A DNA stretch of 64,000 bases from Utricularia gibba (Eukaryota; Plantae; Magnoliophyta). The notes beneath the pieces are model-generated. The model was not told the DNA's origin and made no database searches. It was given only the letters and a program-made list of their open reading frames with translations. The DNA is taken from contig NEEC01000024.1 in NCBI GenBank assembly GCA_002189035.1, forward strand, positions 62,001 through 126,000, given 5' to 3'. Numbering within the stretch: position 1 is the stretch's first letter; each line of letters starts with the position of its first letter. Both the position numbers and the translations under genes were made by a program. Shown piece after piece: positions 9,001 through 58,489 of the stretch.

Positions 9001-12000
9001 CTCGACGAAATCGTGATGCACTTATTGAAGTTAGGATGTCATAAGCACCCAAAATGGTTTTCTCAACCGCATGCTTTATATCTGAGGAGGCGCTCTCGTG
9101 GCAACGGTATCGAGAAGGAGGTCGAGTCGAGCTCGGGCCCATAGTCATTTGTAGGGGATGCAAACGTTGAATTGGCTGCCTACATGAAGGAGCTTGTCGT
9201 TTTTGGGCGGGTGATGTCGTTGTGAACTTCGTTCTGACCCAAGGTTCGGTCTGACTCCTTTGCCACATCGGGTCCTACTCGACGAAAATCGTGCTGCACT
9301 TATTGAAGTTAGGATGTCATAGCACCCAAAATGGTTTTCTCAACCGCATGCTTTATATCTGAGGAGGCGCTCTCGTGGGGCAACGGTATCGAGAAGGAGG
9401 TCGAGTCGAGCTCGGGCCCATAGTCATTTGTGCTCGGCAAAAAACTTGATGCATTTCTTAACGTTGGGTTTTAATTGGCTGCCTACATGGTTTCTCAAGG
9501 AAAAGCTTGTCGTTTTTGGGCGGGTGATGTCGTTGTGAACTTCGTTCTGACCCAAGGTTCGGTCTGACTCCTTTGCCACATCGGGTCCTACTCGACGAAA
9601 ATCGTGATGCACTTATTGAAGTTAGGATGTCATAAGCACCCAAAATGGTTTTCTCAACCGCATGCTTTATATTGAGGAGGCGCTCTCGTGGGCAACGGTA
9701 TCGAGAAGGAGGTCGAGTCGAGCTCGACATAAGCATTTCGGGCTGACTCCTTGATGTCACATCGGGTCCTACTCGACGAAAATCGTGATGCACTTATTGA
9801 AGTTAGGATGTCATTACCCAAAATGGTTTTCGAATCCTCGCATTGCATTTATATTGGCTGGGAAGGCGCTTGTCGTCTTCGTTCTGGGCAACGGTATCGA
9901 GCAGCTCGAGTCGCAGCTCGGGCCCGATAGTCATTTGTAGCTCGGCAAAAAACTTGATGCATTTCTTAACGTTGGTTTTAATTGGCTGCCTACATGGTTT
10001 CTCAAGGAAAAGCTTGAAAATTAACGATTCAGAGCACCCAAGGAAAATTCGCTTCGTATTGATGGGGCATGTCTCAACCGTGCTTTATATTGTCTCGAAC
10101 GGTATCGAGAAGGAGGTCGAGTCGAGCTCGACCCAGGTCGGCACAAAGGAACTTGTCGTTTTTGGGGGGTGATGTCGTTGTGAACTTCGTTCTGACCCAA
10201 GGTAAAACTCGACGGTGATGCACTTATTGAAGTTAGGATGTCATAACCCAAAATACCGCATGCTTTATATTGAGGAGGCGCTCTCGTGGGGCAACGGTAT
10301 CGAGAAGGAGGTCGAGTCGAGCTCATAGTCCTCGGCAAAAAACTTGATGCATTTCTTAACGTTGGGTTTTAATTGGCTGCCTACATGGTTTCTCAAGGAA
10401 AAGCTTGTCGTTTTTGGGCGGGTGATGTCGTTGTGAACTTCGTTCTGACCCAAGGTTCGGTCTGACTCCTTTGCCACATCGGGTCCTACTCGACGAAAAT
10501 CGTGATGCACTTATTGAAGTTAGGATGTCATGAGCACCCAAAATGGTTTTCTCAACCGCATGCTTTATATCTGAGGAGGCGCTCTCGTGGGGCAACGGTA
10601 TCGAGAAGGAGGTCGAGTCGAGCTCGGGCCCATAGTCATTTGTAGCTCGGCAAAAAACTTGATGCATTTCTTAACGTTGGGTTTTAATTGGCTGCCTACA
10701 TGGTTTCTCAAGGAAAAGCTTGTCGTTTTTGGGCGGGTGATGTCGTTGTGAACTTCGTTCTGACCCAAGGTTCGGTCTGAACATCGGGTCGACGAAAATC
10801 GTGATGCAGACCACCCAAAATGGTTTTCTCAACCGCATGCTTTATATCGCTCTCGTGGGGCAACGGTATCGAGATTTCTCGTGGGGGTTATCTGACATGA
10901 AGGAAAAGCTTGTCGTTTTTGGGCGGTGATGTCGTTGTGAACTTCGTTCTGACCCAAGGTTCGGTCTGACTCCTTTGCCACATCGGGTCCTACTCGACGA
11001 AAATCGTGATGCACTTATTGAAGTTAGGATGTCATCCCCAAAATGGTTTTCTCAACCGCATGCTTTATATCATCCGCTTCCTCGGGATGCATGTTGGTTT
11101 TAATTGGCTGCCTACATGGTTTCTCAAGGAAAAGCTTGTCGTATGTCGTTGTGAACTTCGTTCTGACGGGGTCCTACTCGACGAAAATCGTGATGCACTT
11201 ATTGAAGTTAGGATGTCATGAGCACCCAAAATGGTTTTCTCAACCGCATGCTTTATATCGCTCTCGGTGATCGAGTCGTCTGTCATTTGTAACACGTTGG
11301 GTTTTAATTGGCTGCCTACATGGTTTCTCAAGGAAAAGCTTGTCGATGTCGAGACGGAGGGTCGACTCGATTCATGAGCACCCAAAATGGTTTTCTCAAC
11401 CGCATGCTTTATATCTCATATCGCGCTCTCAAACGAAAACGTTGGGTTTTAATTGGCTGCCTACATGGTTTCTCAAGGAAAAGCTTGTCGTTTTTGGGCG
11501 GGTGATGTCGTTGTGAACTTCGTTCTGACCCAAGGTTCGCCACATAGACTCATTTGCCGGTTTTCTCAACCGCATGCTTTATATCTGAGGAGGCGCTCTC
11601 GTGGGGCAACGGTATCGAGAAGGAGGTCGAGTCGAGCTCGGCCCATAGTCATTTGTGGCTCGGCAAAAAACTTGATGCATTTCTTAACGTTGGGTTTTAA
11701 TTGGCTGCCTACATGGTTTCTCAAGGAAAAGCTTGTCGTTTTTGGGCGGGTGATGTCGTTGTGAACTTCGTTCTGACCCAAGGTTCGGTCTGACTCCTTT
11801 GCCACATCGGGTCCTACTCGACGAAATCACTTATTGAAGTTAGGATGTCATCACCCAAAATGGTTTTCTCAACCGCATGCTTTATATCTGAGGCGCTCTC
11901 GTGGGGCAACGGTATCGAGCGGAGGTCGAGTCGAGCTCGGGCCCATAGTCATTTGTGCTCGGCAAAAAACTTGGGTTGGGTTTTAATTGGCTGCCTACAT

Positions 12001-15000: not shown

Positions 15001-18000
15001 AAGTTAGGATGTCATAGCACCCAAAATGGTTTTCTCAACCGCATGCTTTATAAATGGTATCGAGAAGGAGGTCGAGTCGAGCTCGGGCCCATAGTCATTT
15101 GTAGCTCGGCAAAAAACTTGATGCATTTCTTAACGTTGGGTTTTAATTGGCTGCCTACATGGTTTCTCAAGGAAAAGCTTGTCGTTTTTGGGCGGGTGAT
15201 GTCGTTGTGAACTTCGTTCTGACCCAAGGTTCGGTCTGACTCCTTTGCCACATCGGGTCCTACTCGACGAAAATCGTGATGCACTTATTGAAGTTAGGAT
15301 GTCATAAGCACCCAAAATGGTTTTCTCAACCGCATGCTTTATCTGAGGAGGCGCTCTCGTGGGGCAACGGTATCGAGAAGGAGGTCGAGTCGAGCTCGGG
15401 CCCATAGTCATTTGGCTCGGCAAAAAACTTGATGCATTTCTTAACGTTGGGTTTTAATTGGCTGCCTACATGGTTTCTCAAGGAAAAGCTTGTCGTTTTT
15501 TGGGCGGGTGATGTCGTTGTGAACTTCGTTCTGACCCAAGGTTCGGTCTGACTCCTTTGCCACATCGGGTCCTACTCGACGAAAATCGTGATGCACTCAT
15601 GAGCACCCAAAATGGTTTTCTCAACCGCATGCTTTATATCTGAGGAGGCGCTCTCGTGGGGATCGTCGAGCTCGATAGTCACTCGGCAAAAAACTTGATG
15701 TTTCTTAACGTTGGGTTTTAATTGGCTGCCTACATGGTTTCTCAAGGAAAAGCTTGTCGTTTTTGGGCGGGTGTCTGATGTTCGTTGTGAACATACCCAA
15801 GGTTCTCTGCTTTTGAACATCGGGTCCTAGACGAAAATCGCACGTTATTGAAGTTAGGATGTCATCACCCAAAATGGTTTTCTCAACCGCATGCTTTATA
15901 TTGAGGCAACGGTATCGAGAAGGAGGTCGAGTCGAGCTCGGGCCCATAGTCATTTGTAGCTCGGCAAAAAACTTGATGCATTTCTTAACGTTGGGTTTTA
16001 ATTGGCTGCCTACATGGTTTCTCAAGGAAAAGCTTGTCGTTTTTGGGCGGGTGATGTCGTTGTGAACTTCGTTCTGACCCAAGGTTCGGTCTGACTCACA
16101 TCGGGTCCTACTCGACGAAAATCGTGATGCACTTATTGAAGTTAGGATGTCATGCACCAAAATGGTTTTCTCAACCGCATGCTTTATATCTGAGGAGGCG
16201 CTCTCGTGGGGCAACGGTATCGAGAAGGAGGTCGAGTCGAGCTCGGGCCCATAGTCATTTGTAGCTCGGCAAAAAACTTGATGCATTTCTTAACGTTGGG
16301 TTTTAATTGGCTGCCTACATGGTTTCTCAAGGAAAAGCTTGTCGTTTTTGGGCGGGTGATGTCGTTGTGAACTTCGTTCTGACCCAAGGTTCGGTCTGAC
16401 TCCTTTGCCACATCGGGTCCTACTCGACGAAAATCGTGATGCACTTATTGAAGTTAGGATGTCATAAGCACCCAAAATGGTTTTCTCAACCGCATGCTTT
16501 ATATCTGAGGAGGCGCTCTCGTGGGGCAACGGTATCGAGAAGGAGGTCGAGTCGAGCTCGGGCCCATAGTCATTTGTAGGCTCAAAAAACTTGATGCGGG
16601 GTTTTAATTGGCTGCCTACATGGTTTCTCAAGGAAAAGCTTGTCGTTTTTGGGCGGGTGATGTCGTTGTGAACTTCGTTCTGACCCAAGGTTCGTCTGAC
16701 TGGGTCCTACTCGACGAAAAGTCGTGCTGCACTTATTGAAGTTAGGATGTCATGAGCACCCAAAATGGTTTTCTCAACCGCATGCTTTATAAGGAGGCGC
16801 TCTCGTGGGGCAACGGTATCGAGAAGGAGGTCGAGTCGAGCTCGGGCCCATAGTCCTCGGCAAAAAACTTGATGCATTTCTTAACGTTGGGTTTTAATTG
16901 GCTGCCTACATGGTTTCTCAAGGAAAAGCTTGTCGTTTTTGGGCGGTCGTTGTGAACTTCGTTCTGACCCAAGGTTCGGTCTGACTCCTTTGCCACATCG
17001 GGTCCTACTCGACGAAAATCGTGATGCACTTATTGAAGTTAGGATGTCATGAGCACCCAAAATGGTTTTCGCATGCTTTATATTGAGGAGGCGCTCTCGC
17101 AACGGTATCGAGAAGGAGGTCGAGTCGAGCTCGGGCCCATAGTCATTTGTAGCTCGGCAAAAAACTTGATGCATTTCTTAACGTTGGGTTTTAATTGGCT
17201 GCCTACATGGTTTCTCAAGGAAAAGCTTGTCGTTTTTGGGCGGGTGATGTCGTTGTGAACTTCGTTCTGACCCAAGGTTCGGTCTGACTCCTTTGCCACA
17301 TCGGGTCCTACTCGACGAAAATCGTGATGCACTTATTGAAGTTAGGATGTCATAAGCACCCAAAATGGTTTTCTCAACCGCATGCTTTATATCTGAGGAG
17401 GCGCTCTCGTGGGGCAACGGTATCGAGAAGGAGGTCGAGTCGAGCTCGGGCCCATAGTCATTTGTAGCTCGGCAAAAAACTTGATGCATTTCTTAACGTT
17501 GGGTTTTAATTGGCTGCCTACATGGTTTCTCAAGGAAAAGCTTGTTTTTTGGGCGGGTGATGTCGTTGTGAACTTCGTTCTGACCCAAGGTTCGGTCTGA
17601 CTCCTTTGCCACATCGGGTCCTACTCGACGAAAATCGTGATGCACTTATTGAAGTTAGGATGTCATAAGCACCCAAAATGGTTTTCTCAACCGCATGCTT
17701 TATATCTGAGGAGGCGCTCTCGTGGGGCAACGGTATCGAGAAGGAGGTCGAGTCGAGCTCGGGCCCATAGTCATTTGTAGCTCGGCAAAAAACTTGATGC
17801 ATTTCTTAACGTTGGGTTTTAATTGGCTGCCTACATGGTTTCTCAAGGAAAAGCTTGTCGTTTTTGGGCGGGTGATGTCGTTGTGAACTTCGTTCTGACC
17901 CAAGGTTCGGTCTGACTCCTTTCCACATCGGGTCCTACTCGACGAAAATCGTGATGCACTTATTGAAGTTAGGATGTCATAAGCACCCAAAATGGTTTTC

Positions 18001-21000
18001 TCAACCGCATGCTTTATATCTGAGGAGGCGCTCTCGTGGGGCAACGGTATCGAGAGGAGGTCGAGTCGAGCTCGGGCCCATAGTCATTTGTAGCTCGGCA
18101 AAAAACTTGATGCATTTCTTAACGTTGGGTTTTAATTGGCTGCCTACATGGTTTCTCAAGGAAAAGCTTGTCGTTTTTGGGCGGTGATGTCGTTGTGAAC
18201 TTCGTTCTGACCCAAGGTTCGGTCTGACTCCTTTGCCACATCGGGTCCTACTCGACGAAAATCGTGATGCACTTATTGAAGTTAGGATGTCATAAGCACC
18301 CAAAATGGTTTTCTCAACCGCATGCTTTATATCTGAGGAGGCGCTAACGGTATCGAGAAGGAGGTCGAGTCGAGCTCGGGCCCATAGTCATTTGTAGCTC
18401 GGCAAAAAACTTGATGCATTTCTTAACGTTGGGTTTTAATTGGCTGCCTACATGGTTTCTCAAGGAAAAGCTTGTCGTTTTTGGGCGGGTGATGTCGTTG
18501 TGAACTTCGTTCTGACCCAAGGTTCGGTCTGACTCCTTTGCCACATCGGGTCCTACTCGACGAAAATCGTGATGCACTTATTGAAGTTAGGATGTCATAA
18601 GCACCCAAAATGGTTTTCTCAACCGCATGCTTTATATCTGAGGAGGCGCTCTCGTGGGGCAACGGTATCGAGAAGGAGGTCGAGTCGAGCTCGGGCCCAT
18701 AGTCATTTGTAGCTCGGCAAAAAACTTGATGCATTTCTTAACGTTGGTTTTAATTGGCTGCCTACATGGTTTCTCAAGGAAAAGCTTGTCGTTTTTGGGC
18801 GGGTGATGTCGTTGTGAACTTCGTTCTGACCCAAGGTTCGGTCTGACTCCTTTGCCACATCGGGTCCTACTCGACGAAAATCGTGATGCACTTATTGAAG
18901 TTAGGATGTCATGAGCACCCAAAATGGTTTTCTCAACCGCATGCTTTATATTGAGGAGGCGCTCTCGTGGGGCAACGGTATCGAGTCGAGTCGAGCTCGG
19001 GCCCATAGTCATTTGTAGCTCGGCAAAAAACTTGATGCATTTCTTAACGTTGGGTTTTAATTGGCTGCCTACATGGTTTCTCAAGGAAAAGCTTGTCGTT
19101 TTTGGGCGGGTGATGTCGTTGTGAACTTCGTTCTGACCCAAGGTTCGGTCTGACTCCTTTGCCACATCGGGTCCTACTCGACGAAAATCGTGATGCACTT
19201 ATTGAAGTTAGGATGTCATGAGCACCCAAAATGGTTTTCTCAACCGCATGCTTTATATCTGAGGAGGCGCTCTCGTGGGGCAACGGTATCGTCGAGTCGA
19301 GCTCGGGCCCATAGTCATTTGTGGCTCGGCAAAAAACTTGATGCATTTAACGTTGGGTTTTAATTGGCTGCCTACATGGTTTCTCAAGGAAAAGCTTGTC
19401 GTTTTTGGGCGGGTGATGTCGTTGTGAACTTCGTTCTGACCCAAGGTTCGGTCTGACTCCTTGTCGGGTCCTACTCGACGAAAATCGTGATGCACTTATT
19501 GAAGTTAGGATGTCGCACCCAAAATGGTTTTCTCAACCGCATGCTTTATATCGAGGAGGCGCTCTCGTGGGGCAACGGTATCGTCGAGTCGAGCTCGGGC
19601 CCATAGTCATTTGTAGCTCGGCAAAAAACTTGATGCATTTCTTAACGTTGGGTTTTAATTGGCTGCCTACATGGTTTCTCAAGGAAAAGCTTGTCGTTTT
19701 TGGGCGGGTGATGTCGTTGTGAACTTCGTTCTGACCCAAGGTTCGGTCTGACTCCTTTGCCACATCGGGTCCTACTCGACGAAAATCGTGATGCACTTAT
19801 TGAAGTTAGGATGTCATAAGCACCCAAAATGGTTTTCTCAACCGCATGCTTTATATCTGAGGAGGCGCTCTCGTGGGGCAACGGTATCGAGAAGGAGGTC
19901 GAGTCGAGCTCGGGCCCATAGTCATTTGTAGCTCGGCAAAAAACTTGATGCATTTCTTAACGTTGGGTTTTAATTGGCTGCCTACATGGTTTCTCAAGGA
20001 AAAGCTTGTCGTTTTTGGGCGGGTGATGTCGTTGTGAACTTCGTTCTGACCCAAGGTTCGGTCTGACTCCTTTGCCACATCGGGTCCTACTCGACGAAAA
20101 TCGTGATGCACTTATTGAAGTTAGGATGTCATAAGCACCCAAAATGGTTTTCTCAACCGCATGCTTTATATCTGAGGAGGCGCTCTCGTGGGGCAACGGT
20201 ATCGAGAAGGAGGTCGAGTCGAGCTCGGGCCCATAGTCATTTGTAGCTCGGCAAAAAACTTGATGCATTTCTTAACGTTGGGTTTTAATTGGCTGCCTAC
20301 ATGGTTTCTCAAGGAAAAGCTTGTCGTTTTTGGCGGGTGATGTCGTTGTGAACTTCGTTCTGACCCAAGGTTCGGTCTGACTCCTTTTTCCACATCGGGT
20401 CCTACTCGACGAAAATCGTGATGCACTTATTGAAGTTAGGATGTCATAAGCACCCAAAATGGTTTTCTCAACCGCATGCTTTATATCTGAGGAGGCGCTC
20501 TCGTGGGCAACGGTATCGAGAAGGAGGTCGAGTCGAGCTCGGGCCCATAGTCATTTGTGCTCGGCAAAAAACTTGATGCATTTCTTAACGTTGGGTTTTA
20601 ATTGGCTGCCTACATGGTTTCTCAAGGAAAAGCTTGTCGTTTTTGGGCGGGTGATGTCGTTGTGAACTTCGTTCTGACCCAAGGTTCGGTCTGACTCCTT
20701 TGCCACATCGGGTCCTACTCGACGAAAATCGTGATGCACTTATTGAAGTTAGGATGTCATAAGCACCCAAAATGGTTTTCTCAACCGCATGCTTTATATC
20801 TGAGGAGGCGCTCTCGTGGGCAACGGTATCGAGAAGGAGGTCGAGTCGAGCTCGGGCCCATAGTCATTTGTAGCTCGGCAAAAAACTTGATGCATTTCTT
20901 AACGTTGGGTTTTAATTGGCTGCCTACATGGTTTCTCAAGGAAAAGCTTGTCGTTTTTGGGCGGGTGATGTCGTTGTGAACTTCGTTCTGACCCAAGGTT

Positions 21001-24000
21001 CGGTCTGACTCCTTTGCCACATCGGGTCCTACTCGACGAAAATCGTGATGCACTTATTGAAGTTAGGATGTCATAAGCACCCAAAATGGTTTTCTCAACC
21101 GCATGCTTTATATCCGCTCTCGTGGGCAACGGTATCGAGAGGAGGTCGAGTCGAGCTCGGCCCATAGTCATTTGTGGCTCGGCAAAAAACTCTGCCTCGT
21201 TGTGAACTTGTGATTCGTTCTGACCCAAGGTTACTCGGACTCGTCATTAAAGTTAGGATGTCATGAGCACCCAAAATGGTTTTCTCAACCGCATATATCG
21301 AGAAGGATCGGTCGAGTCGAGCTCGGGCCCATAGTCATTTGTAGCTCGGCAAAAAAACTTGATGCATTTCTTAACGTTGGGTTTTAATTGGCTGCCTACA
21401 TGGTTTCTCAAGGAAAAGCTTGTCGTTTTTGGGCGGGTGATGTCGTTGTGAACTTCGTTCTGACCCAAGGTTCGGTCTGACTCCTTTGCCACATCGGGTC
21501 CTACTCGACGAAAATCGTGATGCACTTATTGAAGTTAGGATGTCATAGCACCCAAAATGGTTTTCTCAACCGCATGCTTTATATCTGAGGAGGCGCTCTC
21601 GTGGGGCAACGGTATCGAGAAGGAGGTCGAGTCGAGCTCGGGCCCATAGTCATTTGTGGCTCGGCAAAAAACTTGATGCATTTTTAACGTTGGGTTTTAA
21701 TGGCTGCCTACATGGTTTCTCAAGGAAAAGCTTGTCGTTTTTGGCGGGTGATGTCGTTGTGAACTTCGTTCTGACCCAAGGTTCGGTCTGACTCCTTTCC
21801 ACATCGGGTCCTACTCGACGAAAATCGTGATGCACTTATTGAAGTTAGGATGTCATAAGCACCCAAAATGGTTTTCTCAACCGCATGCTTTATATCTGAG
21901 GAAGGCGCTCTCGTGGGGCAACGGTATCGAGAAGGAGGTCGAGTCGAGCTCGGGCCCATAGTCATTTGTAGCTCGGCAAAAAACTTGATGCATTTCTTAA
22001 CGTTGGGTTTTAATTGGCTGCCTACATGGTTTCTCAAGGAAAAGCTTGTCGTTTTTGGGCGGGTGATGTCGTTGTGAACTTCGTTCTGACCCAAGGTTCG
22101 GTCTGACTCCTTTGCCACATCGGGTCCTACTCGACGAAAATCGTGATGCACTTATTGAAGTTAGGATGTCATAAGCACCCAAAATGGTTTTCTCAACCGC
22201 ATGCTTTATATCTGGAGGCGCTCTCGTGGGGCAACGGTATCGAGAAGGAGGTCGAGTCGAGCTCGGGCCCATAGTCATTTGTGGCTCGGCAAAAAACTTG
22301 ATGCATTTCTTAACGTTGGGTTTTAATTGGCTGCCTACATGGTTTCTCAAGGAAAAGCTTGTCGTTTTTGGGCGGGTGATGTCGTTGTGAACTTCGTTCT
22401 GACCCAAGGTTCGGTCTGACTCCTTTTTCCACATCGGGTCCTACTCGACGAAAATCGTGATGCACTTATTGAAGTTAGGATGTCATAAGCACCCAAAATG
22501 GTTTTCTCAACCGCATGCTTTATATTTGAGGAGGCGCTCTCGTGGGGCAACGGTATCGAGAAGGAGGTCGAGTCGAGCTCGGGCCCATAGTCATTTGTAG
22601 CTCGGCAAAAAACTTGATGCATTTCTTAACGTTGGGTTTTAATTGGCTGCCTACATGGTTTCTCAAGGAAAAGCTTGTCGTTTTTGGGCGGGTGATGTCG
22701 TTGTGAACTTCGTTCTGACCCAAGGTTCGGTCTGACTCCTTTGCCACATCGGGTCCTACTCGACGAAAATCGTGATGCACTTATTGAAGTTAGGATGTCA
22801 TGAGCACCCAAAATGGTTTTCTCAACCGCATGCTTTATATCTGAGGAGGCGCTCTCGTGGGGCAACGGTATCGAGAAGGAGGTCGAGTCGAGCTCGGGCC
22901 CATAGTCATTTGTGGCTCGGCAAAAAACTTGATGCATTTCTTAACGTTGGGTTTTAATTGGCTGCCTACATGGTTTCTCAAGGAAAAGCTTGTCGTTTTT
23001 GGGCGGGTGATGTCGTTGTGAACTTCGTTCTGACCCAAGGTTCGGTCTGACTCCTTTGCCACATCGGGTCCTACTCGACGAAAATCGTGATGCACTTATT
23101 GAAGTTAGGATGTCATGAGCACCCAAAATGGTTTTCTCAACCGCATGCTTTATATTGATAAGGCGCTCTCGTGGGGCAACGGTATCGAGCAGGTGGTCGA
23201 GTCGAGCTCTGGCCCATAGTCATTTGTAGCTCGGCAAAAAACTTGATGCATTTCTTAACGTTGGGTTTTAATTGGCTGCCTACATGGTTTCTCAAGGAAA
23301 AGCTTGTCGTTTTTGGGCGGGTGATGTCATTGTGAACTTCGTTCTGACCCAAGGTTCGGTCTGACTCCTTTGCCACATCGGGTCCTACTCGACGAAAATC
23401 GTGCTGCACTTATTGAAGTTAGGATGTCATGCACCCAAAATGCAACCGCATGCTTTATATTTGATGTGGGGCAACGGTATCGAGAAGGAGGTCGAGTCGA
23501 GCTCGGGCCCATAGTCATTTGTAGCTCGTCAAAAAATTTGATGCATTTTTAACGTTGGGTTTTAATTGGCTGCCTACATGGTTTCTCAAGGAGAAGCTTG
23601 TCGTTTTTGGGCGGGTGATGTCGTTGTGAACTTCGTTCTGACCCAAGGTTCGGTCTGACTCCTTTGCCACATCGGGTCCTACTCGACGAAAATCACTTAT
23701 TGAAGTTAGTAAGCACCAAAATGGTTTTCTCAACCGCATGCCTTATATCTGAGGAGGCGCTCTCGTGGGCAACGGTATCGAGAAGGAGGTCGAGTCGAGC
23801 TCGGGCCCATAGTCATTTGTAGCTCGGCAAAAAACTTGATGCATTTCTTAACGTTGGGTTTTAATTGGCTGCCTACATGGTTTCTCAAGGAAAAGCTTGT
23901 CGTTTTTGGGCGGGTGATGTCGTTGTGAACTTCGTTCTGACCCAAGGTTCGGTCTGACTCCTTTGCCACATCGGGTCCTACTCGACGAAAATCGTGATGC

Positions 24001-24995
24001 ACTTATTGAAGTTAGGATGTCATGAGCACCCAAAATGGTTTTCTCAACCGCATGCTTTATATTTGATAAGGCGCTCTCGTGGGGCAACGGTATCGAGAAG
24101 GAGGTCGAGTCGAGCTCGGGCCCATAGTCATTTGTAGCTCGGCAAAAAATTGATGCATTTCTTAACGTTGGGTTTTAATTGGCTGCCTACATGGTTTCTC
24201 AAGGAAAAGCTTGTCGTTTTTGGGCGGGTGATGTCGTTGTGAACTTCGTTCTGACCCAAGGTTCGGTCTGACTCCTTTGCCACATCGGGTCCTACTCGAC
24301 GAAAATCGTGATGCACTTATTGAAGTTAGGATGTCATAAGCACCCAAAATGGTTTTCTCAACCGCATGCCTTATATCTGAGGAGGCGCTCTCGTGGGGCA
24401 ACGGTATCGAGAAGGAGGTCGAGTCGAGCTCGGGCCCATAGTCATTTGTAGCTCGGCAAAAAACTTGATGCATTTATTAACGTTGGGTTTTAATTGGCTG
24501 CCTACATGGTTTCTCAAGGAAAAGCTTGTCGTTTTTGGGCGGGTGATGTCGTTGTGAACTTCGTTCTGACCCAAGGTTCGGTCTGACTCCTTTGCCACAT
24601 CGGGTCCTACTCGACGAAAATCGTGATGCATTTATTGAAGTTAGGAGGTGTCATGAGCACCCAAAATGGTTTTCTCAACCGCATGCTTTATATTTGATGA
24701 GGCGCTCTCGTGGGGCAACGGTATCGAGAGGAGGTCGAGTCGAGCTCGGGCCCATAGTCATTTGTAGCTCGGCAAAAAAATTGATGCATTTATTAACAAT
24801 TGGCTGCCTACATGGTTTCTCAAGGAAAAGCTTGTCGTTTTTGGGCGTTGTGAACTTCGTTCTGACCCAAGGTTCGATCTGACTTCTTTGCCACATCGGG
24901 TCCTACTCGACGAAAATCGTGATGCATTATTGAAGTTCATGAGCACTCAAAATGGTTTTCGCATGCTCGCTGTGGGCATTGGTATCCTCGAGTTC
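1..24995 (+). repeat. Tandem satellite array, 315-bp monomer (157+158-bp dimer), ~80 copies, single orientation
   Basis: AAGGAAAAGCTT recurs at 19681 and 19996 (period 315), and ORF-track copies repeat with the same offset (19642/19957). The array runs off the left edge and decays at ~24.9-25.0 kb. Several stretches are scrambled or deletion-rich. Confidence 0.99.
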
Positions 24996-25022
24996 GCACA
25001 TAGTCCTCTCGAAATTGACTTG

Positions 25023-25040
25023 ATATATATATATATATAT
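25023..25040. repeat. (AT)9 microsatellite
   Basis: Direct reading; a shorter copy lies at ~25922. Confidence 0.9.
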
Positions 25041-25341
25041 TTATTTTTCATTTATACTGCCACTCGACCCTTAGGAGCATTTGGATTGAGTGGACATCAT
25101 AAGGGCACAAGGACGTGGTTTACGCATAACCCACGCCCGTGTGGCATTGGCATGCTGCTGCGTACGCACACGGCGTGGTTTACGCACAACCCACGCCCGT
25201 GTCGCGTTGTCATGCAGCTGCGTTTGCACAAGGGCGTTGTTTAACCATAACCCACGCCCGTGTGGCGTTGTCATGCTGCTGCGTGTGTTTACGGGGCTTG
25301 CTTGCGGTGCTGTTGCGTATGCACACATGCTGCTTGCGGTG

Positions 25342-25572
25342 CTCGAGCGCAAAGTCAGTGTTAGCCCGGCGAAAAAAGTGATGCATTTCTTATCGTTGGG
25401 TTTTCATGAGCTGCGTAAAATTGTTTTTTGATTAAACGACTTCTAGATTTGGGGCGCTCTCAAGGTGAACTCGGTCCGAGCCCCGGGTTCGGGGTGGCTC
25501 ATGAGCCCAGTCGGGTCCGACTCGACGAAAGTGATGATGCATTTGTAGAAATTAGGATGTCACGTGCACCCC
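25342..25572 (+). repeat. Diverged partial satellite monomer embedded in the 0.9-kb unit
   Basis: CTCGAGCGCAAAGTCAGTGTTAGCCCGGCGAAAAAAGTGATGC matches satellite CTCGGGCCCATAGTCATTTGTAGCTCGGCAAAAAACTTGATGC at 33/43. Colinear similarity continues through TCGGGTCCGACTCGACGAAA...TTAGGATGTCA..GCACCC. Confidence 0.9.
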
Positions 25573-26134
25573 ACATTACAAAAAAATTATTTTTATAATC
25601 ATAAGGTATATGCTTTTTAAAATATAAATAATGTAAATATGTTATTTATTAAACCATATAAAACATACGAAAGTTTCTTATTTTCTAATTTTATTAGCAT
25701 TCGATGCTTAGTTATACTTTGGATGGAGGGTGTATTTTTACTTTCATCATTTTAATTATCATTCAATCCTTGGTAGTGATTCGAATCGAGTGTATGCTTT
25801 TTATTTAAATATTTATACTGCCGCTCGACCCTTATGTATGATTCGGATCGAACGTGTATCTTTTCTTTTAATATTTTTATGCGCAATCGATCCTTAAGAA
25901 TGTATGATACGAATTGACTGGATATATATATATTTATTTTTCATTTATACTGCCGCTCGACCCTTAGGAGTCATTTGGATTGAGTGGACATCACAAGGGC
26001 ACAAGGACGTGGTTTACGCATAACCCACGCCCGTGTGGCGTTGGCATGCTGCTGCGTGTAATGATATCAGGAACAAGGTACCAATGCTACCCTCAAACTC
26101 GTCTCATTGATGTTCACATGTGATGTAAAGGAAG

Positions 26135-27068
26135 CTCCAGACCGTGTGATTCCCTTCCAAGGGGAGACCTTGAGGCATGCTTTGTCCTTTATTTGTAGCT
26201 CCAAGGGTCGGCGCCTTTGATCTGCCCAGCTTTTGTGTCGATCTTGCGCCACCTTGAGTTTCCGTCGAATCATCCTGACATTTTGTTCGGCGTCCTGCAC
26301 CAAATCTGGTCCTAGCATCTTCCTCTCACCCACTTCGTCCCAGTGCAGTGGTACTCGGCACCGTCGTCCGTATAGCGCCTCGAAGGGAGCCATGCCTAGG
26401 CTTGCCTGGTAGCCATTGTTGTAAACAAATTCCGCCAGGTAGACATGCTCGTCCCACCCTCCCTGCAATTCTAGCGCACAAGCTCGCAATAAGTTCTCTA
26501 GTACTTGGATGGTCCTTTCTGATTGCCCATCTGTCTGCGGGTGGAAGGCGATGCTCCTGAGTAGTTTTGTCCCCAGTTCCTCTTGGAGTGCCTTCCAGAA
26601 GCGAGAGGTGAATCTGACGTCCCGATCAGATACTATGGTCGCTGGCGCCCCATGAAGGCGTACGATTTCCTTGAGGTACACCTTGGCAAGGGCGTTCACG
26701 CTCAAGTCTGCTCGCATCGGTATGAAGTACGCGCTCTTGGTCAGTCTGTCCACTACGACCCATGCTGCATTCACACCATTCTTTGTCTTCGGCAGCCCCG
26801 TGACGAAATCCATCGCCACATCTTCCCACTTCCATATGGGTATATCCAGCGGCTGCAAGTTACCTGCTGGTTTCTGGTGTTCTATCTTCGTTCTTTGGCA
26901 TACCTGGCATCGTGCTACCCATCCCGCGATTGAGAGCTTTAGCCCCGGCCACCAAAAGCTCTTCTTTATATCCTGGTACATCTTTGTGTTTCCTGGGTGA
27001 ATGGTCAGGGGCGAATGGTGTGCTTCTCTCAGAATTTCTTCTCTCAGGCCGCCCCTGCTGGTACCCAT
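26135..27068 (-). pseudogene. Integrase (HHCC zinc finger + DDE core), C-terminally truncated
   Basis: HHSPLTIHPG...[48 protein letters not shown]. Similarity ends after KVSPWKGITR. Confidence 0.92.
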
Positions 27069-27856
27069 ACCCGTCCATATGCACAGATTATTCCGTCCTC
27101 TCGTAAGCTGTAGGGTTTGGTCCCCCTTTCAGCGGCGTCTCGTTGCACTTCGCCCGAGTTGTCTTCCCTTTGTGCTGATCTTATCTGAGCCAATAGATCC
27201 GTGGTTACCCTGATCATGGCCACATCTGCATCTGTCCATATCCCCATTCGCGCTAGTTCTCTAGATAAGTCTTCGTTCGCCATCATTCTGCTTAGTGCGT
27301 CAGCCACCACGTTGGCCTTCCTAGGGTGATAGTTTACCTCGAGGTCATAGTCTTTGATGAGCTCCAGCCATCGCCTTTGCCTCATGTTCAGTTCCTTCTG
27401 GGTGAAGATGTACTTCAAGCTTTGGTGATCCATGTATAGATCGCACCGTGCTCCATATAGGTCGTGCCGCCACACCTTTAGTGCATGTACCACCGCTACT
27501 AATTCCAGATCGTGTACGGGATAGTTCTTCTCGTGAGGCTTTAATTGCCGCGAGGCATAGGCTATCACATGCCTTTCTTGCATTAGTACCGCCCCAAGGC
27601 CTATGCCACATGCGTCGGAATACACGGTGTAGTCCTTGCCAGGTTGTGGTAGTCTTAGCACAGGTGCCATGGTCAGTTTTTCCTTGAGTTGATCGAATGC
27701 CGCCTGACATTGTTCCGTCCATGCGAACTTGGCGTCCTTCCTTGTGAGACTCGTTAGTGGTGTGGCTATCTTGGAGAAATCCTGTATGAATCGTCTGTAG
27801 TACCCAGCTAAACTCAGAAAGCTGCGTACCTCACTTGCGGTTCGGGTACCGCCCAT
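27044..27856 (-). pseudogene. RT connection / RNase H, frameshifted at both ends
   Basis: [61 protein letters not shown]. Confidence 0.92.
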
Positions 27857-28875
27857 TGGACCACTGCTTCTACCTTCCTCGGGTCGACTTCTACTCCCTT
27901 CTCACTGATCACATGTCCCAGAAAGGAGATGCTTCCCAAGCAAAAGTTGCACTTACTCTTTTTCCCGTATAGCTGTTTCTCTCGCATGCGCCCAAGTACC
28001 GCCTTGAGGTGCCTGCGGTGTGTCTCCAGGTCGGGTGAGTAAATCAGGATGTCGTCGATGAAAACCACCACGAAGTTGTCTAGGTAGGGCTGGAACACCC
28101 TATTCATCAAGTCCATGAAGACTGCCGGTGCGTTGGTGAGGCCGAAGGGTAGTACCATGAACTCGTAGTGCCCGTAGCGTGTCCTGAAGGCTGTCTTGGC
28201 AATGTCTCCTTCTCTGATCTTGAGTTGGTGGTATCCAGATCTTAGATCTATTTTGGAGAATACCGTCGCCTCCCTTAGTTGGTCGAACAGGTCTTCAATG
28301 CGAGGGAGGGGGTACCTATTTTTGATGGTGATCTTGTTCAGCTCTCTATAATCCACGCATAGCCTCATGGTGCCGTCCTTCTTTCGTACGAACAGCACTG
28401 GCGCTCCCCATGGGGAGTGGCTGGGTCGGATGAACCCCTTCTCTAATAGATCGTCTAGCTGTCTTCGGAGTTCCTTAAGTTCGGCGGGGGCCAGGCGGTA
28501 AGGTGCTTTGGAGATAGGTGTGGCACCGTCCACCAGTTTTATCTGAAATTCTAGTTCTCGGTCGGGCATGCTCCCTGGCAGTTCGTCGGGAAATACGTCT
28601 TCATACTCTGTTAGTGAGTTTCTGGTTTCCTCATCAGTCTCAGTTGGAGTTGAGGTGGCGTAGGCCACCACATAGTGATCTTCGGGGCCGTTTATTTCTC
28701 TGTCCCGGCGCACGCCGGCGTTTACGGCATATTCCCATTGTGTTCCCTGCTCATCCTTCCACCCGATTGTCCTAGAACCACATCCGATGCATGCAGAGTG
28801 CATGCACAGCCAGTCCATTCCCAGTATGATTTCGAATTCTGCCATGTCTATTGCTATTAGGTCGGCCTTGGTCAA
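27814..28875 (-). pseudogene. Reverse transcriptase
   Basis: [60 protein letters not shown]. Same frame as gag-PR but separated by an in-frame TAG at 28879-28881. Confidence 0.95.
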
Positions 28876-28878
28876 CGA

Positions 28879-30129
28879 CTAGCCTATGTTCAGCATGATC
28901 CCCTTGTATAATCCTGTTCCTGCTAGCTCACCACCCCCTGGTGTTCGTACCCTGTACCTATGGTCTTGCCCTTTCCCTAAACCTATGCGCTCCACGCAGG
29001 CTCGCGAGACGAACGAATGTGTGGCCCCGCAATCAAACAAGACCCGAATAGGATGTGAGTTGAGGGCAAAAGTACCTGCGATGGCATTGACATCTTGCTC
29101 TGCGTTGTCCCTGGTAAGATGGAATACACGAGGTCGACCAGTGCCAGTGGTACGGGGCATAGGTGTGGTTCCCTTCTTCTCTGTTACCCCTAACTTCTTT
29201 GGGCATTCCCTTGCAAAGTGTCCAATTTCCCCACAGTAAAAGCACCCGCCCGTCAGTAGGCGGCACTCTCCTGAGTGTGCTCTCCCGCACACTGCGCACG
29301 CCGCTCGTTGGGCCGTAGCGGGTCCGGCTGGTGCTGCTACTACCTTCCGCACGCCGTCTTTGCTCCTCTTTCCCAAGACCGCATCTCTCCTCTGGAGTTC
29401 AGTTTCTACCGCCACGGCTGTAGCGACTAGGTCGGTTAACCTATTCTCCCTAGCAGATATCACTCTGTCCTGGATGCGAGGGGCCAATCCCCTATGGAAT
29501 CTCAGCATCTTCAGCGTCTCACTTGCGGCTATGCCCGGGTCGTATCGCAGCAGCTTCTGGAATCGCCCATGGTACTCATGGACAGTCTCTCCTGGCTTCT
29601 GCCCAATGGTGTCGAACTCCGTGATCTTCTGTAAGATTACTCCCTCTAGTACATACCATTCATTGAAGATCGCCTTGAATTCTTCCCACTTCATGCCATC
29701 CATCGTTGTGGGGCGATGGCTCCGCCACCAATGTGCTGCATCTCCAGTGAGGAGGAAACTCGCCACTGACGCCTTTAGCTGGCTGGGTATTTTCCCCAAG
29801 AACATGTTTTGTTCTATCTCGGCCAGCCATGTTTCTGCTTGCTCCGCGGTGCCTCCCTCATATGTGGGTACCTTTGCCTTCTTCAATTTCCAGTAGTATT
29901 CACGTACCTGCCCCTCAATGGTCAGGTTGTTCAGCGCTTGGGGCCTACACCCTTGGTGAATGACTGTGCCTAGCATCTCTGCAAATTTTGCCATGGTCTC
30001 TATTCCTTCTGTGCCATTGTTGCCATTTGTTTGGCTCCCTTGTTCGCCTTCGTTTTCTGGTATGGTACCATCCCCGCCCCTATGTTCCTGGTTCCCTCCC
30101 TGGATAGAGCTAACCCTAGTTCTAACCAT
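28879..30129 (-). pseudogene. Gag + aspartic protease
   Basis: Gag motif FLLTGDAAHWW, zinc knuckle CFYCGEIGHFAREC, protease LFDCGATHSF. Likely start ATG at 30129 (MVRTR). Confidence 0.93.
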
Positions 30130-30249
30130 TGCTGCCTGCACAATGCTCTTGTTAGTTCTCGTTAGCTCATGTGTTACCTCGACTTGCGGATGGCGGGGAT
30201 GGCCCAAGCAGTGTTCTACACTTTCCTATATGGTCCGCCACGAAACCTC

Positions 30250-30261
30250 GCTCTGATACCA
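30250..30261 (-). promoter_or_regulatory. Primer-binding site (initiator Met tRNA)
   Basis: TGGTATCAGAGC on the minus strand, 2 nt after the LTR end ...GTTACA (30264). Confidence 0.93.
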
Positions 30262-30263
30262 TT

Positions 30264-31720
30264 TGTAACGATCCTTGACAACACCCTAGTCAGGAGGACC
30301 ATCACCACGCACGTCTGGTGGTATGATCGCGCAGCACACTCCGCCGGAGAGGCTTCCCGTGCTGCGCGTCCTGCGCACGCGTGGTACTGCCTCGCCCGCA
30401 CATGCCTTAAGGCCTCGTCCTTCCTCATGCAGGGTCCTTGGCCGAGGGAGCTTAGTATAACGCGAAATAACCGACCTTTATTCATAATGATCAACTAGTC
30501 CAAGTAAAGGAGGAGTGCACGAAAACATCAAGAGAATTAGAGAGAGTTCGGTGGTTGCACTCTAATCGCGTTGTTCCCAGGACTCTACTACTCGGCCGCT
30601 CCACCCTCGCCATCCGCCCCTCCTATCCCTCCCAATGACTCATCCCCAGCAGTACCTACATGACCAGTAAGGGGTTAGCCTATTGTACTATGCGCAAGCA
30701 AGTACAATACGTGAGACTAGCCTTTAGTCACAAGTCCTATGCGCAAGCAAGATTTAAGAGGGGGTTTTCACAAGTAGTGGCTTTCTACTCTAAAGAAATT
30801 ACTAAAGATTCATGAGACAAATTCTACACTAAAATGCAACAAAATACATAGATCAGCATTTTTTGGAAATTTAAAAATTAACTATTTCACTTAAACTGAA
30901 AGTTAATCATGCTTAAAAGAAACTTAAACAATTTCAGGTTAATGAAAACATTCAAACGAGTTCATGTTCTAGCAATTAATGTAAACTGAACGAGTAGGTT
31001 GCAAAAGTGCAGAAATGAAATGCAGGAAATAAAAAGTTCTTTCAATTCTCCAAATCAGTTCTTGCGCAAGTGTCAACTTCTTCTTATTACACTGGTTCTA
31101 AAAGTTTGTTGGGAAGGTTCCAAGTGCTCTGCTACTGTTCTGAGCGATGGAGATGGTTAGAGTGTCACTCTGGAACTGCTTCTGTCGTCTTCTTCACACA
31201 GTCACATCTCTATTCTATAGGCCTCAAGGCATTGGAGATGAGTTCTGCTGTCACGCTAGAACTATCCCTCCTTCATCTTCTTCCCTTAAACTGGTTCGAA
31301 GTCATCGGAAAAGCCTCTCCTTGTGTTTGAAATCTCCATCCTCTCTCTACTCGATTGCGCCTACCCTTGTTGCGTGCCTTGGGGAGGCATAGCTTCCCCT
31401 AGCTCCTTGTTTCCAGCTGGGTTTCTTATCTCTTCGCGCATGCATATGTATAATTCCCATTTTTCCCCTAGACTAATAAATACTATGCAGAGTGATCAAA
31501 ATATGTGGCCCAGCCCAAATAGACTAGCCATTCCTGAGCCTAGATGAACAGTAAGTTCACCCCAACAAGCAGATCGATACAAAATAGGCCCAAAACATGT
31601 TTTTACATAGTAAATTTACTCACACTAATTTTGACGTTTTTACCTATTCTAGCTCACCTAAATCCTTATCCTAACACTGAAAAAGAACACGAATTCTACC
31701 AACTTTGACACAACATCAGC
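30264..31720 (-). repeat. 5' LTR of the 26-31.7 kb Tekay-like element
   Basis: CA terminus adjacent to the PBS; non-coding. The distal end is not sharply identifiable. Confidence 0.7.
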
Positions 31721-31744
31721 AATCTAATCGTAACCCATGCTGTA

Positions 31745-32420
31745 TGGAATCCTCCACTTTGGATGACATAGGCGTGGGTATTGGGTAGCCATAGCCGACG
31801 CCCATATGTGATTCAGTGGTGCATTTAAGAAATTCCATGTCAGCGTGGGTTATGGTTACCCACTACAATATTTTAAAGTTGTATTACTCATCAGTCGATC
31901 TTGAGGTTTTATTTTGGATTGAGTGCATTTTTTATGTTAAATTTGTATTATCACATATGAGCGCGGATTAGCTGTAATCCACACCCATATTTATAGGAAT
32001 TTTGAAATCTCCTACGGGCACAGTTTAACGATAACCCACATCCGTATGAAATCTGTTAACCCACCACTTAGCCAAATATGGGCATGAGTTACACATAACC
32101 GACACCTGTATGAGATTTTACTGGTGCGTTTAAGAAAATGCATACCGACGTGGGTTATTTGGATTAATTGATCCATAGGTCTTATTTGACTCGAGTGCAT
32201 ATTTTTCTATTTGAATATTATATCACGCTCGACCCTTAGGTGTCATTTGGATCAAGTGTATATTTTTTATTTTAAAATTGTAATACAATCGATCCTACGG
32301 TGTTATTTCGATCGAGTGCATATTTTTTTATTTTAAAATTGTGTTATACTTCAATCCTAAGGTGTTATTTGGATTGAGTGCATTTTTTTTATTTTAATTT
32401 TGTATTACGCATCATTGTAT
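31745..32420 (+). repeat. Array of ~60-bp hairpin modules (GGCGTGGGTTAT/ATAACCCAC type, then CTCGAYCC..GGATCGAGTG type)
   Basis: Modules start at 32229, 32289 and 32351 (spacing 60, 62). CGCTCGACCCTTAGGTGTCATTTGGATCAAGTG matches the 25.0/25.9 kb motif. Confidence 0.8.
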
Positions 32421-32999
32421 TTTTAGAAATATTTTGGATCGATTGATGTGAGACTATGACAATGAAACAAGCAATCATAATGTATTAAAAATTATACAAT
32501 CTAAACAGGCAAGAAAACATTACATAATACAAAAGGTGGCAATCCAAGAATGTTGATCCATTGATGTAAAATCAGCAAGACAAATGCCAACCATGTACCA
32601 TGTGTAAAGACATGGCCACCCTATGAGATTCATGCACCTGGTGTAAGGACTAGGGCACTCATGTCATACTAGAGCTCACTATGGGCGGGCAGGGCTGTGG
32701 GTATGGTCCTAGCGACAACGGTGAGCATAAGGGCTCGACGGGTGGAAGGCCACCCATGCGTACCATGTGCAAGGGCACGGACCCCTAGCAGAGAGGATGC
32801 ATTCAAATATGAGATGAGGACAAGGATAGCGGAGACGGAACATATGAGATGGATGCCACGAAAGGGTGTAATAGAGGGAGTTTCACATAGATTCATATTA
32901 GTGTGGTAGATGGGATGGAAAATCCTACAAAGGACTGACTGATGTTGCGTCATATTTCAAAGTATTTGAGTCAATTTCAGTGTTAGAGTATTAGGATTA

Positions 33000-35959: not shown

Positions 35960-37070
35960 TTTTACTGCCTAGTTTTATATTTTTGCGCATAAACACCGTG
36001 ATTGTGTTATTTTAGTCTTAGTTGGGACTAAATGGTAGATTTAGTCCCAACCTTCTAATAGTTTTATTCGAGTAATGCAGTGCAGGTCACAACACAAATC
36101 CCAAGGAGCCGAATATGCATAGTGTAGTGGCAGAAGATGAATCCAAAAGTCTGAAAAGTGGTACACACAAAATCCAAGGAGGAAAAAGGGAGATTTTGGA
36201 CAAAAGGAGGGAAAGTTGGAGAGAGAAGGCAGATCTCCCATTGGAGACTCACGACAAGTTTCTGGAGATTTTTCTGGAGGAAGAAGAAGGAAGGGAACGA
36301 CGAACCAGAAGAACACAGCTTTTCCTTGAAGATTTATTTTCGTTTTTTATGCTTACTGTTCCTAGCTAAGACTAGATTTGGATTTCCTGCATGAACAAAT
36401 TGTCTTTTCTACTTCTGCTATATATTGCTCATTGTTGTTTAGCTTTGAAACAAGGATATTGCTTAGGATATGCTATGAAAACGTTTTCCTTTACCTTATC
36501 ATGAGTGGCTAAGCACTTAGGGGGTCCCTTGGGGTGAAAAGGGGAGAAATATGCTAATCCATCCTTAGACCTAATGAACCATCAGTCACACCACTTCCCT
36601 AACAAACCAGGATAGATCCAGGAGGGGGAAATAGTGAAATCCAACTTGACAACCCTAATTAGAGGTAGACCAAAGATTAGGGGGAAAAACAAGTATCCGG
36701 GTAGACCTGGATCTTGTGAGTTAGTTGTATGATTTATGATTTATGTGAGCTTGTTTAGTGATAGGCATATATTCCCTAGGAGTCCCAAGGTATCACCCAT
36801 TCCATTCCAAAAACTACCGAATCCCAAAACTTGTTACTTTTCTTTACTGCATTCCATTGTAGTTCTGTCTTATTCCTAATTAAGACCAAATTTTACCAAC
36901 GTGACACTAGTTTCATGCTTTGACTAATCACTTGACAAGCACCTGCTCTTCGTGTTCGACCCTGATCACTATGCTCATTATTGTTTTATGCTAGAATGTA
37001 TATTAGGTTATAAATTTATTTGATAGGAGAAATTTTCATTTAACGACATTGCATAATTTTTCGTTTATCA
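35960..37070 (+). repeat. Athila 5' LTR (left end uncertain)
   Basis: Homologous to 39975-40360 and 41099-42236; CA terminus before the PBS. Confidence 0.85.
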
Positions 37071-37073
37071 AAT

Positions 37074-37091
37074 TGGCGCCGTTGCTGGGGA
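37074..37091 (+). promoter_or_regulatory. Primer-binding site (tRNA-Asp)
   Basis: TGGCGCCGTTGCTGGGGA, one mismatch from the Athila-type TGGCGCCGTTGCCGGGGA. Confidence 0.9.
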
Positions 37092-37257
37092 GTGGTGTTT
37101 AATTGTTTTGTGATTCGGTTGATGCATTTGCGTTCTTCTGGTGCATGTGATCTTGTTTTTCACCCTGCACAAGAGTACTATCAGCAAGAACCACACAAGA
37201 GTGAGAGAAGCAGCAAGGTTGAGCAGACTCCCTACTGTTACTCAAGCTAATTGCAAT

Positions 37258-38950
37258 ATGGCAAAACAGGAGAAGACCCTGAATGAGCTTGATGCAGCCG
37301 ACCATACATACAGAGGGCTGTGTATTAGGTTCTCTGCACAACCAACGAATTAAAGCCAGCTATGATTAATTTTATGCCCAAGTATTATGGAAAAGTGGGT
37401 GAAAACCCTCATGAACATCTTGATAATGTCATTGTTGTTTGCACCTCTTTCAAGAGTGCTGGTATGACTGAGGATGCCATCTGTTTGAGGGCATTCCAAT
37501 TTACATTGGAAGGAAGTGCAAAAATGTGGTTCAACTCTTTGAAGCCTGGAAGTATCACAGATTGGATTGGTATGAAGAAAGTATTTCTTAGCAAATATTT
37601 CCCTGCTTCAAAAGCTGAAGGAATAAGGAAGGAAATCAGTGATATTGAGCAGTCAAATGGCGAATCTTTACATGAATATTGGGAGCGTTTTAATCACTTG
37701 CTAGGCTCCTGTCCACACCACGGATTTCAGACCAATGCATTGGTCAAGTATTTTTATGATAGTCTTCTATGCATAGATACAGCCATGGTGGATTCTGCAG
37801 CAGGTGGGTTTTTGAGAAAAAGACTCCCACAGAAGCTCTTGCATTGCTTGAGGAGTTGGCCGAGCACTCCAGACATATAATCACAAAACATGCCTCGAAT
37901 AGAAGGGTTTATGAACTGGAATGCAAGCCAAAGTCATCAGAAAGTGAGTTGACGAAAATGTGGCAGCCACAATGAGATGATGAAGGAACTATTTTTATTC
38001 CAAGCTAAGAATATGCCTTGCAGGAACTGCCACAGAATTGGAAACATTGCTGATAAATGTCCCGAATTGATGGAGGAAGAACATGTGAAAGCAATGGGAT
38101 ATTTGGAGCCACAAAGGAAGAAATATGATCCCTATTTGAGCACCTACAATCTTGGATGGAGGGATCATCCAAATTTCAGATGGAATAATAGTGATAATTC
38201 TTACAAGGGTGAGAGTTCATCAGTTGGACAGCAAGGATTTCGGCAAAATTTCCAGAAGCAGCAGCAACGTTCTTATCAAGCTCCACCATTTCGCAAGCCA
38301 AACTAGTAGATGCAACAGCAATTTCAGCCTCCAAACCAGAATAATTCTGGAGGAAATTCTGGAAGTTCATTGGAGGATATTTTGAAGACTTTCATGACCC
38401 AATCAATCAAAAACCAAGGTGAGAACCAACAAGCTATCAAGAATCTTGAAATTCAAGTTATTGAGCTAGCAATAGAGGTTGGGGAGCTGAAGCAAAAAGG
38501 AAGCCTGCCGTCGCAAGCCAAACAAAACCCCAACTCTAGGGGAGGACAGAATATCAGCGCAATGACATTGAGAAGCGGAAAAGAAAAACCTCGAAGAGAA
38601 TTAGTCTAACCTAAGAGTAATTTAGAGACGGCAGAAGAGCCTGAAGTTGAGGTGGAAGGAGATGCTGAAGAACAAGAAGTGGAGATTGCTACTGAGCCTC
38701 TTGTGGTAAAAGTAACCCCAACACCATTTCCAGGAAGGCTGAAGGCGAGAGAGGAGCAAAATGAAAAAGAAAAGATGTTGAGAGCCTTGGGAAATACCCA
38801 ATTAAATTTGACATTGCTCGAGTATATTGACTTGGTGCCCAAAAGTGTGAAGTACCTGAAGCAGCTCTGTATGTCAAAACCAAAATTGAAGGAAAAAGGC
38901 AAGGTGAAGTTGAGTGAGAGTTGTTTCAGCCCTTTTGACTTGGAAACTAC
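37258..38950 (+). pseudogene. Athila gag, multiple stops and frameshifts
   Basis: GENPHEHL, LRAFQFTLEGSAKMWF, SLHEYWERFNHLLGSCPHHG, STYNLGWRDHPNFRW, ISAMTLRSGKE, split over several ORFs. Confidence 0.88.
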
Positions 38951-57912: not shown

Positions 57913-57916
57913 AATA

Positions 57917-58482: not shown

Positions 58483-58489
58483 TAAAAAT

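Follow-up and report, generated by a model that had tools for sequence, protein, structure and literature searches.

How does a lone, diverged piece of a tandem satellite come to lie just outside the array to which it is related, surrounded by repeats of another kind, and is it the source of that array or a remnant of it? An earlier note on this part of the Utricularia gibba genome had taken the piece for an ancestral copy and the 0.9-kb unit that contains it for the progenitor, or birthplace, of the satellite. We have followed up this proposal by analysing one 64-kb window (the whole stretch of 64,000 nucleotides, to which all positions below refer) together with short public contigs. Our best explanation is that the piece, at positions 25341-25576, represents a fossil sister copy of the array repeat, a reading to which we give about an even chance of being right.

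The satellite array occupies positions 1-25009 on the plus strand and was recognised as a tandem repeat of 314-bp dimers, each composed of a B subunit of ~160 bp and an A subunit of ~156 bp. With its period of ~314 bp it fills the first 25 kb of the window and ends at ~25009. The B and A subunits are distantly related to each other (~52% alike in a global alignment). Numerous deletions and irregular stretches are present in the interior of the array, and the final ~250 bp are degenerate with several deletions. According to Tandem Repeats Finder, the interior block at 6900-9700 is much less uniform (80-84% matches, 11-13% indels) than the parts at 16700-24900 (94-96%); hence, the array is composed of blocks of different age, and its most diverged part does not lie at the right edge. 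A literature search on bladderwort satellites gave no published description of the 314-bp repeat, and strings of the satellite sequence had no match in a full-text literature search. Moreover, a pattern scan of metagenomes with the B-start motif of both types returned three unrelated chance matches, and searching 23800-26100 against Rfam (E up to 10) for a 5S rRNA gene remnant or another RNA origin gave one chance-level snoRNA match. Within the window, no significant homology between the satellite and element sequence was detected, the best E value being 0.05 at 51820-51905.

Beyond the array end the DNA is non-satellite for ~330 bp, and the fragment then begins, in the same orientation as the array, about 332 bp past its end. 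Local alignment of 25341-25576 (236 bases) with the dimer gave 175 matches over 242 columns (72%) in a colinear arrangement, and in BLAST the fragment matched the array dimer with an E value of 1.5e-35, which rules out chance similarity. These measurements agree with the earlier description of a 231-bp segment, 350 bp past the array end, that is colinear with ~0.7 monomer at 70-77% identity. The fragment covers the last ~20-23 bp of A, the entire B and the first ~56-60 bp of the next A; it corresponds to 0.75 of a dimer, i.e. less than one period, and ~80-100 bp from the middle of A are absent. Its parts, all on the plus strand, are referred to below as F0 (25341-25360, ending one base before 25361; an A-end-like start with 15/20 bases matching the A end), F1 (25361-25516; a complete B-type subunit, at best 70% identical to array B and with 22 A-shared states) and F2 (25517-25576; the first ~60 bp of an A-type subunit, 78% identical to the A start and 58% to the B start). 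At the diagnostic sites of F0 and F2 taken together, 25 match A and five match B. Since the fragment crosses both the A-to-B and the B-to-A subunit junctions in the register of the array, and has clear A- and B-leaning parts, it derives from a tandem A-B-A arrangement, and its colinear, in-register homology makes it a member of the 314-bp dimeric family. All array copies are 70-74% identical to it in register and ~60% out of register, and no array unit exceeds 74%. It does not grade into the array; the registers of the two are nearly equal, with the array ending at A position ~150 and the fragment starting at A position 134. BLAST revealed no further satellite relics to the right of 25576.

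The age of the fragment relative to the array was judged from F1, which was aligned with 30 clean A units and 41 clean B units of the array. When F1 is compared with the A and B consensus, 63 columns are identical in all three, 44 are shared with B only and 23 with A only; F1 is private at 17 columns where A equals B, and all three differ at 13. The coexistence of A-only and B-only motifs in this B-like subunit, on which the earlier note had built its case, proved to be exact: GGCGCTCTC is present in 30/30 of the clean A units and 0/41 of the clean B units, GTGAAC is present in 0/30 and 41/41, respectively, and F1 carries both. The sequence GGGTTTTCATGAGCTGC occurs nowhere in the array. There is also a general excess of A-shared states, as, among the 34 ungapped sites at which both A and F1 depart from B, F1 has the A base at 22 (1/3 expected; binomial P 1.8e-4), and none of these 22 states appears in array B (0/902 cells in the 41 B units). 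The A-type states are interspersed among B-type sites (runs test P 0.42), and a single gene-conversion tract from A into a B unit is thereby ruled out. In the mutation spectrum, the private changes of the fragment show no excess of transitions or of C-to-T.

In a maximum-likelihood tree, of the kind that had been proposed for these subunits, F1 is not nested inside either of the array clades (support 100/100 for A and 99/96 for B) and is thus no member of the homogenised A or B units; it falls outside both, on the branch connecting them and nearer to B. The path lengths are 0.49 for F-B, 0.92 for F-A and 1.16 for A-B, with within-clade distances of 0.006-0.016. F1 split from the B lineage before the last sweeps of the array, and a rough clock on the change counts would make this split about half as old as the A/B duplication. 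With A as outgroup, the relative rate comparison gave 13 private changes for F1 and 22 for array B (p 0.18); as both have changed, F1 represents a sister lineage and not an ancestor.

The question remains whether the fragment also predates the differentiation of A and B, as the earlier note had it. The start of F1 is 55% alike to F2 compared to 66% for the array B start and A start over the same stretch; the short end stretches reverse this relation (flank 64% vs array 46%), and start and end stretches combined give ~57% for the flank and ~60% for the array. The subunit types in the flank are thus as unlike as A and B in the array, and the fragment is not in a less differentiated state. Early branching therefore stands in one sense, since both the tree and the retained states make the copy older than the last homogenisation of the array, but not in the other, because A and B were already differentiated when it branched (25 vs five diagnostic sites, 44 vs 23 columns, 55% vs 66% likeness).

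The sequence surrounding the fragment consists of two kinds of short tandem repeats, identified by repeat comparison. On the left, an AT-rich unit of a 62-bp type (25010-25077, plus strand) forms the start of the 0.9-kb period and is followed by ~3.5 copies of a 61-bp imperfectly palindromic ("hairpin") unit with a GC-rich spacer (25078-25340, plus strand). On the right, the fragment is followed by a degenerate run of the 62-bp AT units (25577-25975, plus strand) and by the start of a second hairpin block, belonging to a second copy of the 0.9-kb period and cut off at 26057 (25976-26057, plus strand). The flanks are locally duplicated: a 136-bp direct repeat, 25029-25163 and 25922-26057, is 97% identical and defines the period, so that a 0.9-kb unit is indeed present in the flank. 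Its characterisation as a hairpin-repeat setting holds insofar as 61-bp units with imperfect palindromes flank the fragment, but their folding z-scores are modest (-0.9 to -2.2). Neighbouring repeats have diverged by 3-11% compared to 28% for the fragment against the array.

The flank runs straight into the integrase of a Ty3/gypsy retrotransposon at 26058. This element, referred to as element 1, lies on the minus strand at 26058-32450 (the upper LTR limit is provisional) and was recognised by its coding domains and LTR. Its gag, protease, reverse transcriptase, RNase H and integrase core are recognisable (gag to integrase core, 30207-26067); the element lacks the integrase C-terminus and the 3' LTR, and alignments with homologues reach right to the end of its last open frame. 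The 5' LTR ends at ~30263, next to a tRNA-Met-type primer binding site, TGGTATCAGAGC, at 30261-30250. An exact look-up of the integrase open reading frame found no record, and the best identity in a word-based homologue search was 62%. The AT units of the flank, including those at 25577-25975, have homologues of the same orientation among the AT units in the 5' LTR of element 1 (32155-32445), with 63-75% identity and E values down to 9e-27, and this LTR also has hairpin-like motifs; a satellite-like piece is absent from it. Judging from the shared AT units and hairpin-like motifs, the flank is LTR-type (U3-like) tandem-repeat sequence of the Ty3/gypsy group to which element 1 belongs. We also considered whether the flank is the 3' LTR of element 1 itself and rejected this, as the match is limited to the AT units (63-75%) and 30263-31700 has no counterpart in the flank.

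Other copies sharing the left flank of the fragment, for which the proposed origin in a hairpin-containing unit calls, were found both in the window, at 49359-49659, and in public contigs from three studies. The copy in the window is on the plus strand; its hairpin part, 49359-49627, is 93% identical to 25061-25326, and it is cut by the LTR end of a further element. An ungapped alignment of bases 49635-49659, which follow directly, with the first 25 bases of the fragment has 19/25 matches, a score that was reached in 0/5000 shuffles, while an unconstrained search gave no significant satellite likeness beyond the second hairpin block. Between the two loci the hairpin part is thus 93% identical and the 25 satellite-like bases only 76%, which implies a mosaic history; the hairpin blocks may, for instance, have exchanged sequence later on. 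Compared to the first locus, 25366-25730 (F1, F2 and the first AT units) is absent.

The element that cuts the second copy, element 3, is a degenerate Ty3/gypsy element on the minus strand (49660-58447) with LTRs at 49660-50076 and 58027-58447 that are 93.6% identical, and with remnants of gag, RNase H and integrase at 57604-53578. No target-site duplication was seen flanking its LTRs. About 3.5 kb separate the end of the integrase remnant (53578) from the 3' LTR (50076), and in this respect element 3 resembles elements with a Tat/Retand-type 3' region. On its far side lies a piece of AT unit (58448-58481, plus strand) that is 94% identical to 25731-25763. The second hairpin module, in turn, sits inside the 3' LTR of another element, element 2, a chromodomain-bearing Ty3/gypsy element on the minus strand; the first part of this LTR is at 58482-59362, starting with TGTAAC at 59362 next to a polypurine tract at 59376-59363. 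A segment of the LTR is duplicated (48884-49350 and 58553-59020, 89%), and the two copies flank the hairpin module and element 3. The homology of this 467-bp segment extends for another 70-100 bp.

Other parts of this region are also rearranged. Minus-strand sequence at 47200-48563 contains spliced exons of a host gene with a Nop domain (NOP56/58-type, snoRNA-binding; Pfam E values 1.6e-34 and 9.5e-12); its N-terminal exons were not seen before the element 2 LTR begins, and the retrotransposon nest therefore truncates or disrupts this gene at a distance of only ~22 kb from the array. Direct repeats at 36678-37070 and 39974-40360 (85%) and at 36501-37066 and 41679-42237 (70%) surround plus-strand gag and protease remnants (37362-39810), and this arrangement at 36501-42237 points to another nested LTR element.

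Part of 25000-26060 is present in ten public runs from five studies, and aquatic metagenome runs contain small shares of the words sampled from it, as would be expected for a water plant. Contigs of four of these runs were aligned to 24850-26250 at 80% likeness; the depth of these contigs is not readable as copy number. The junction between the hairpin units and the fragment is bridged by contigs from three studies: organism A (three contigs), a plant metagenome and a second organism code, organism B, for which one contig places 283 bases on 25172-25453 with 16 mismatches and eight gap letters. The junction exists in two versions, one of which has small deletions at 25328-25336 and ~5% mismatches and is common to three runs including that of organism B; it may correspond to an allele, a paralogue or the element-free state of the second locus. 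The right junction of the fragment is also bridged (two contigs), and several contigs begin their exact match at 25578. The contig joints, whose intervening letters are undefined, suggest further places where an A-type start abuts AT units. Loose contig ends contain satellite variants that are absent from the array in the window, e.g. the A-type continuation variant GATTTTTTCAACAACATACTTTAAACTTGA (16 contigs) and, in organism A, the B-end variant GGTCTGGCTCCTGAGCCCA. Within the window the latter matches only F1, from which it differs at 3/19 bases, and its resemblance to F1 implies that F1-like states occur elsewhere in the satellite family. In organism B the loose ends are of the array type, which means that the array-type dimer is itself not young.

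Based on these data, we favour a scenario in which a fragment of 1.5 subunits (the end of A, a whole B and the start of A) would have been taken from an earlier tandem satellite that was already dimeric, so that the direction of descent would be from satellite to fragment rather than from fragment to satellite. The fragment would have reached its present site either through rearrangement with retrotransposon-derived sequence or by being captured into it. Separated from the array by non-satellite DNA, the fragment would then have been excluded from unequal exchange and conversion within the array. Meanwhile, the array would have fixed ~22 B-specific changes and become nearly uniform, and the fragment would have kept older bases and gathered ~13 changes of its own. 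A copy that keeps older bases outside a homogenising array looks ancestral for that reason. Against the fossil reading count the recurrence of the junction inside the 3' LTR of element 2 and its presence, in two versions, in contigs of three studies, one of them under a second organism code, which is what is expected of a retrotransposon-borne piece. The near-equal register of array end and fragment start would fit a plain split of an old array edge, too.

One alternative turns the direction of descent around: a short tandem repeat of ~157-bp units, carried by a Ty3/gypsy element in its LTR or 3' region, would be the source, from which a dimer was amplified into the array, and the flank copy would be the surviving donor. 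The LTR-like setting of the fragment, the same junction in the 3' LTR of element 2 and the bridging contigs from three studies, a second organism code among them, all speak for such a seed. An array and a fragment in the same orientation only 330 bp apart would also be expected, and tandem repeats internal to Ogre/Tat elements are a documented source of satellites (PMC7004042). The fragment's position outside the array clades and its older states agree with this alternative too; a copy set apart at any time before the last sweep would be placed outside these clades, and the tests proposed in the earlier note cannot tell a seed from a fossil. The evidence against it comes from the make-up of the fragment. 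As it stands, the fragment cannot supply a whole monomer, being shorter than a dimer with the middle of A missing; the differentiation between its subunits has already gone as far as that between A and B; and it is a sister with changes of its own, not an ancestor. In addition, the array is not contiguous with it, and the LTR of element 1 has the AT and hairpin motifs but no satellite-like piece. In the material covered, the junction was seen at two places in the window (one in the 3' LTR of element 2) and in a few contigs, and not as a dispersed family of high copy number; F-like states also occur in another satellite variant. The contigs of organism B carry array-type units; however, only six of its contigs matched at 80% likeness, and a species with the module but with few satellite copies remains compatible with them. 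We consider a seed of this kind unlikely. That the LTR-derived module is the true source of the satellite, its donor having been preserved within 330 bp of the product and being conserved in a second species with few copies of the satellite, is in our view quite unlikely. As to the 0.9-kb unit in the flank, the proposal that it is the progenitor is not supported: it already contains an A|B|A arrangement, the middle of A is missing from it, a foreign gap of 330 bp separates it from the array, and by relative rate its satellite piece is a sister.

A fossil of the neighbouring array must also be weighed against an origin in another extant subfamily, the fragment having been imported by segmental duplication, as filler DNA at a double-strand break or by recombination, with no special tie to this array. 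The loose contig ends make this conceivable, as they show that other variants exist (GATTTTTTCAACAACATACTTTAAACTTGA in 16 contigs, and a B end close to F1), and so does the heavily rearranged flank with its truncated elements and no target-site duplication around element 3. Yet the B-end variant is not identical to F1 (3/19 bases differ), none of the contigs could be shown to contain F-type units in tandem, and the orientation and the near-identical register that the fragment shares with the adjacent array would have to be coincidental. An import thus strikes us as unlikely too. Finally, that recent array units were cut off and then mutated in place, leaving a plain decayed edge, is highly improbable and, for a recent unit, refuted by the tree as well as by the way in which the differences are biased: the degenerate last 250 bp of the array with their several deletions and the shared orientation and nearly shared register would agree with it, but departures from B are biased to the A base (22/34, P 1.8e-4), the B clade excludes F1 at 99/96, no array unit is more than 74% identical to the fragment, and the fragment has diverged by 28%, far more than the neighbouring repeats (3-11%).

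Read as a fossil sister copy, the fragment has value beyond this locus. Arrays erase their own history by homogenisation, so that few records of earlier states survive, and isolated old copies belong to them; here, the fragment shows that the A/B dimer was already differentiated at the split and that array B has fixed ~22 changes since. For now it serves as a useful outgroup for polarising changes in the satellite and is not a demonstrated origin. The locus also shows how, in a small plant genome prone to deletions, this satellite family has become entangled with tandem repeats of the LTR type from Ty3/gypsy elements. If it were true that the element-borne copy is the source, the route from retrotransposon to satellite would extend beyond the Ogre/Tat elements of legumes.

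For that route, the FabTR satellites of Lathyrus sativus provide the published comparison. They originated from short tandem repeats located in the hypervariable 3' regions of Ty3/gypsy elements of the Ogre/Tat type (PMC7004042; Macas et al. 2009, cited therein). In the published cases, short arrays are found at a fixed place in many element copies, and carriers are present in relatives that lack the satellite (PMC7004042). The present locus is similar in that a satellite-like repeat lies in retrotransposon-derived sequence downstream of pol, beside a long related array, and in that the module is present under a second organism code. However, the short and long arrays in the published cases are close in sequence and exist in many copies, whereas we found two or three low-copy junctions, and the piece described here is 28% diverged and shorter than one dimer, so that its 0.75 of a dimer does not amount to the whole monomer that the element-borne copies supply in the Ogre/Tat cases. 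Moreover, its hosts are rearranged LTR fragments, one of them from a chromodomain-bearing element rather than from one of the Ogre/Tat type.

Retrotransposons that insert into satellite arrays may also capture satellite fragments or intersperse them. This resembles the present situation, where Ty3/gypsy elements nest beside the array and the satellite piece lies between LTR-type repeats; it differs in that no clean insertion boundaries or target-site duplications flank the fragment, and the junctions look like deletion or recombination joints. In humans, old layers of alpha satellite flank the active centromere arrays, and the relic monomers in these layers are diverged. Like them, the fragment is an isolated copy outside the homogenising array that keeps older states and falls outside the tight array clade; unlike them, it is a single piece of 1.5 subunits rather than a layer, and it is set in LTR-like repeats that recur with the same junction. 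The closest match to the fragment is the familiar one of diverged relic monomers that lie outside homogenised arrays, in this case in an LTR-derived setting.
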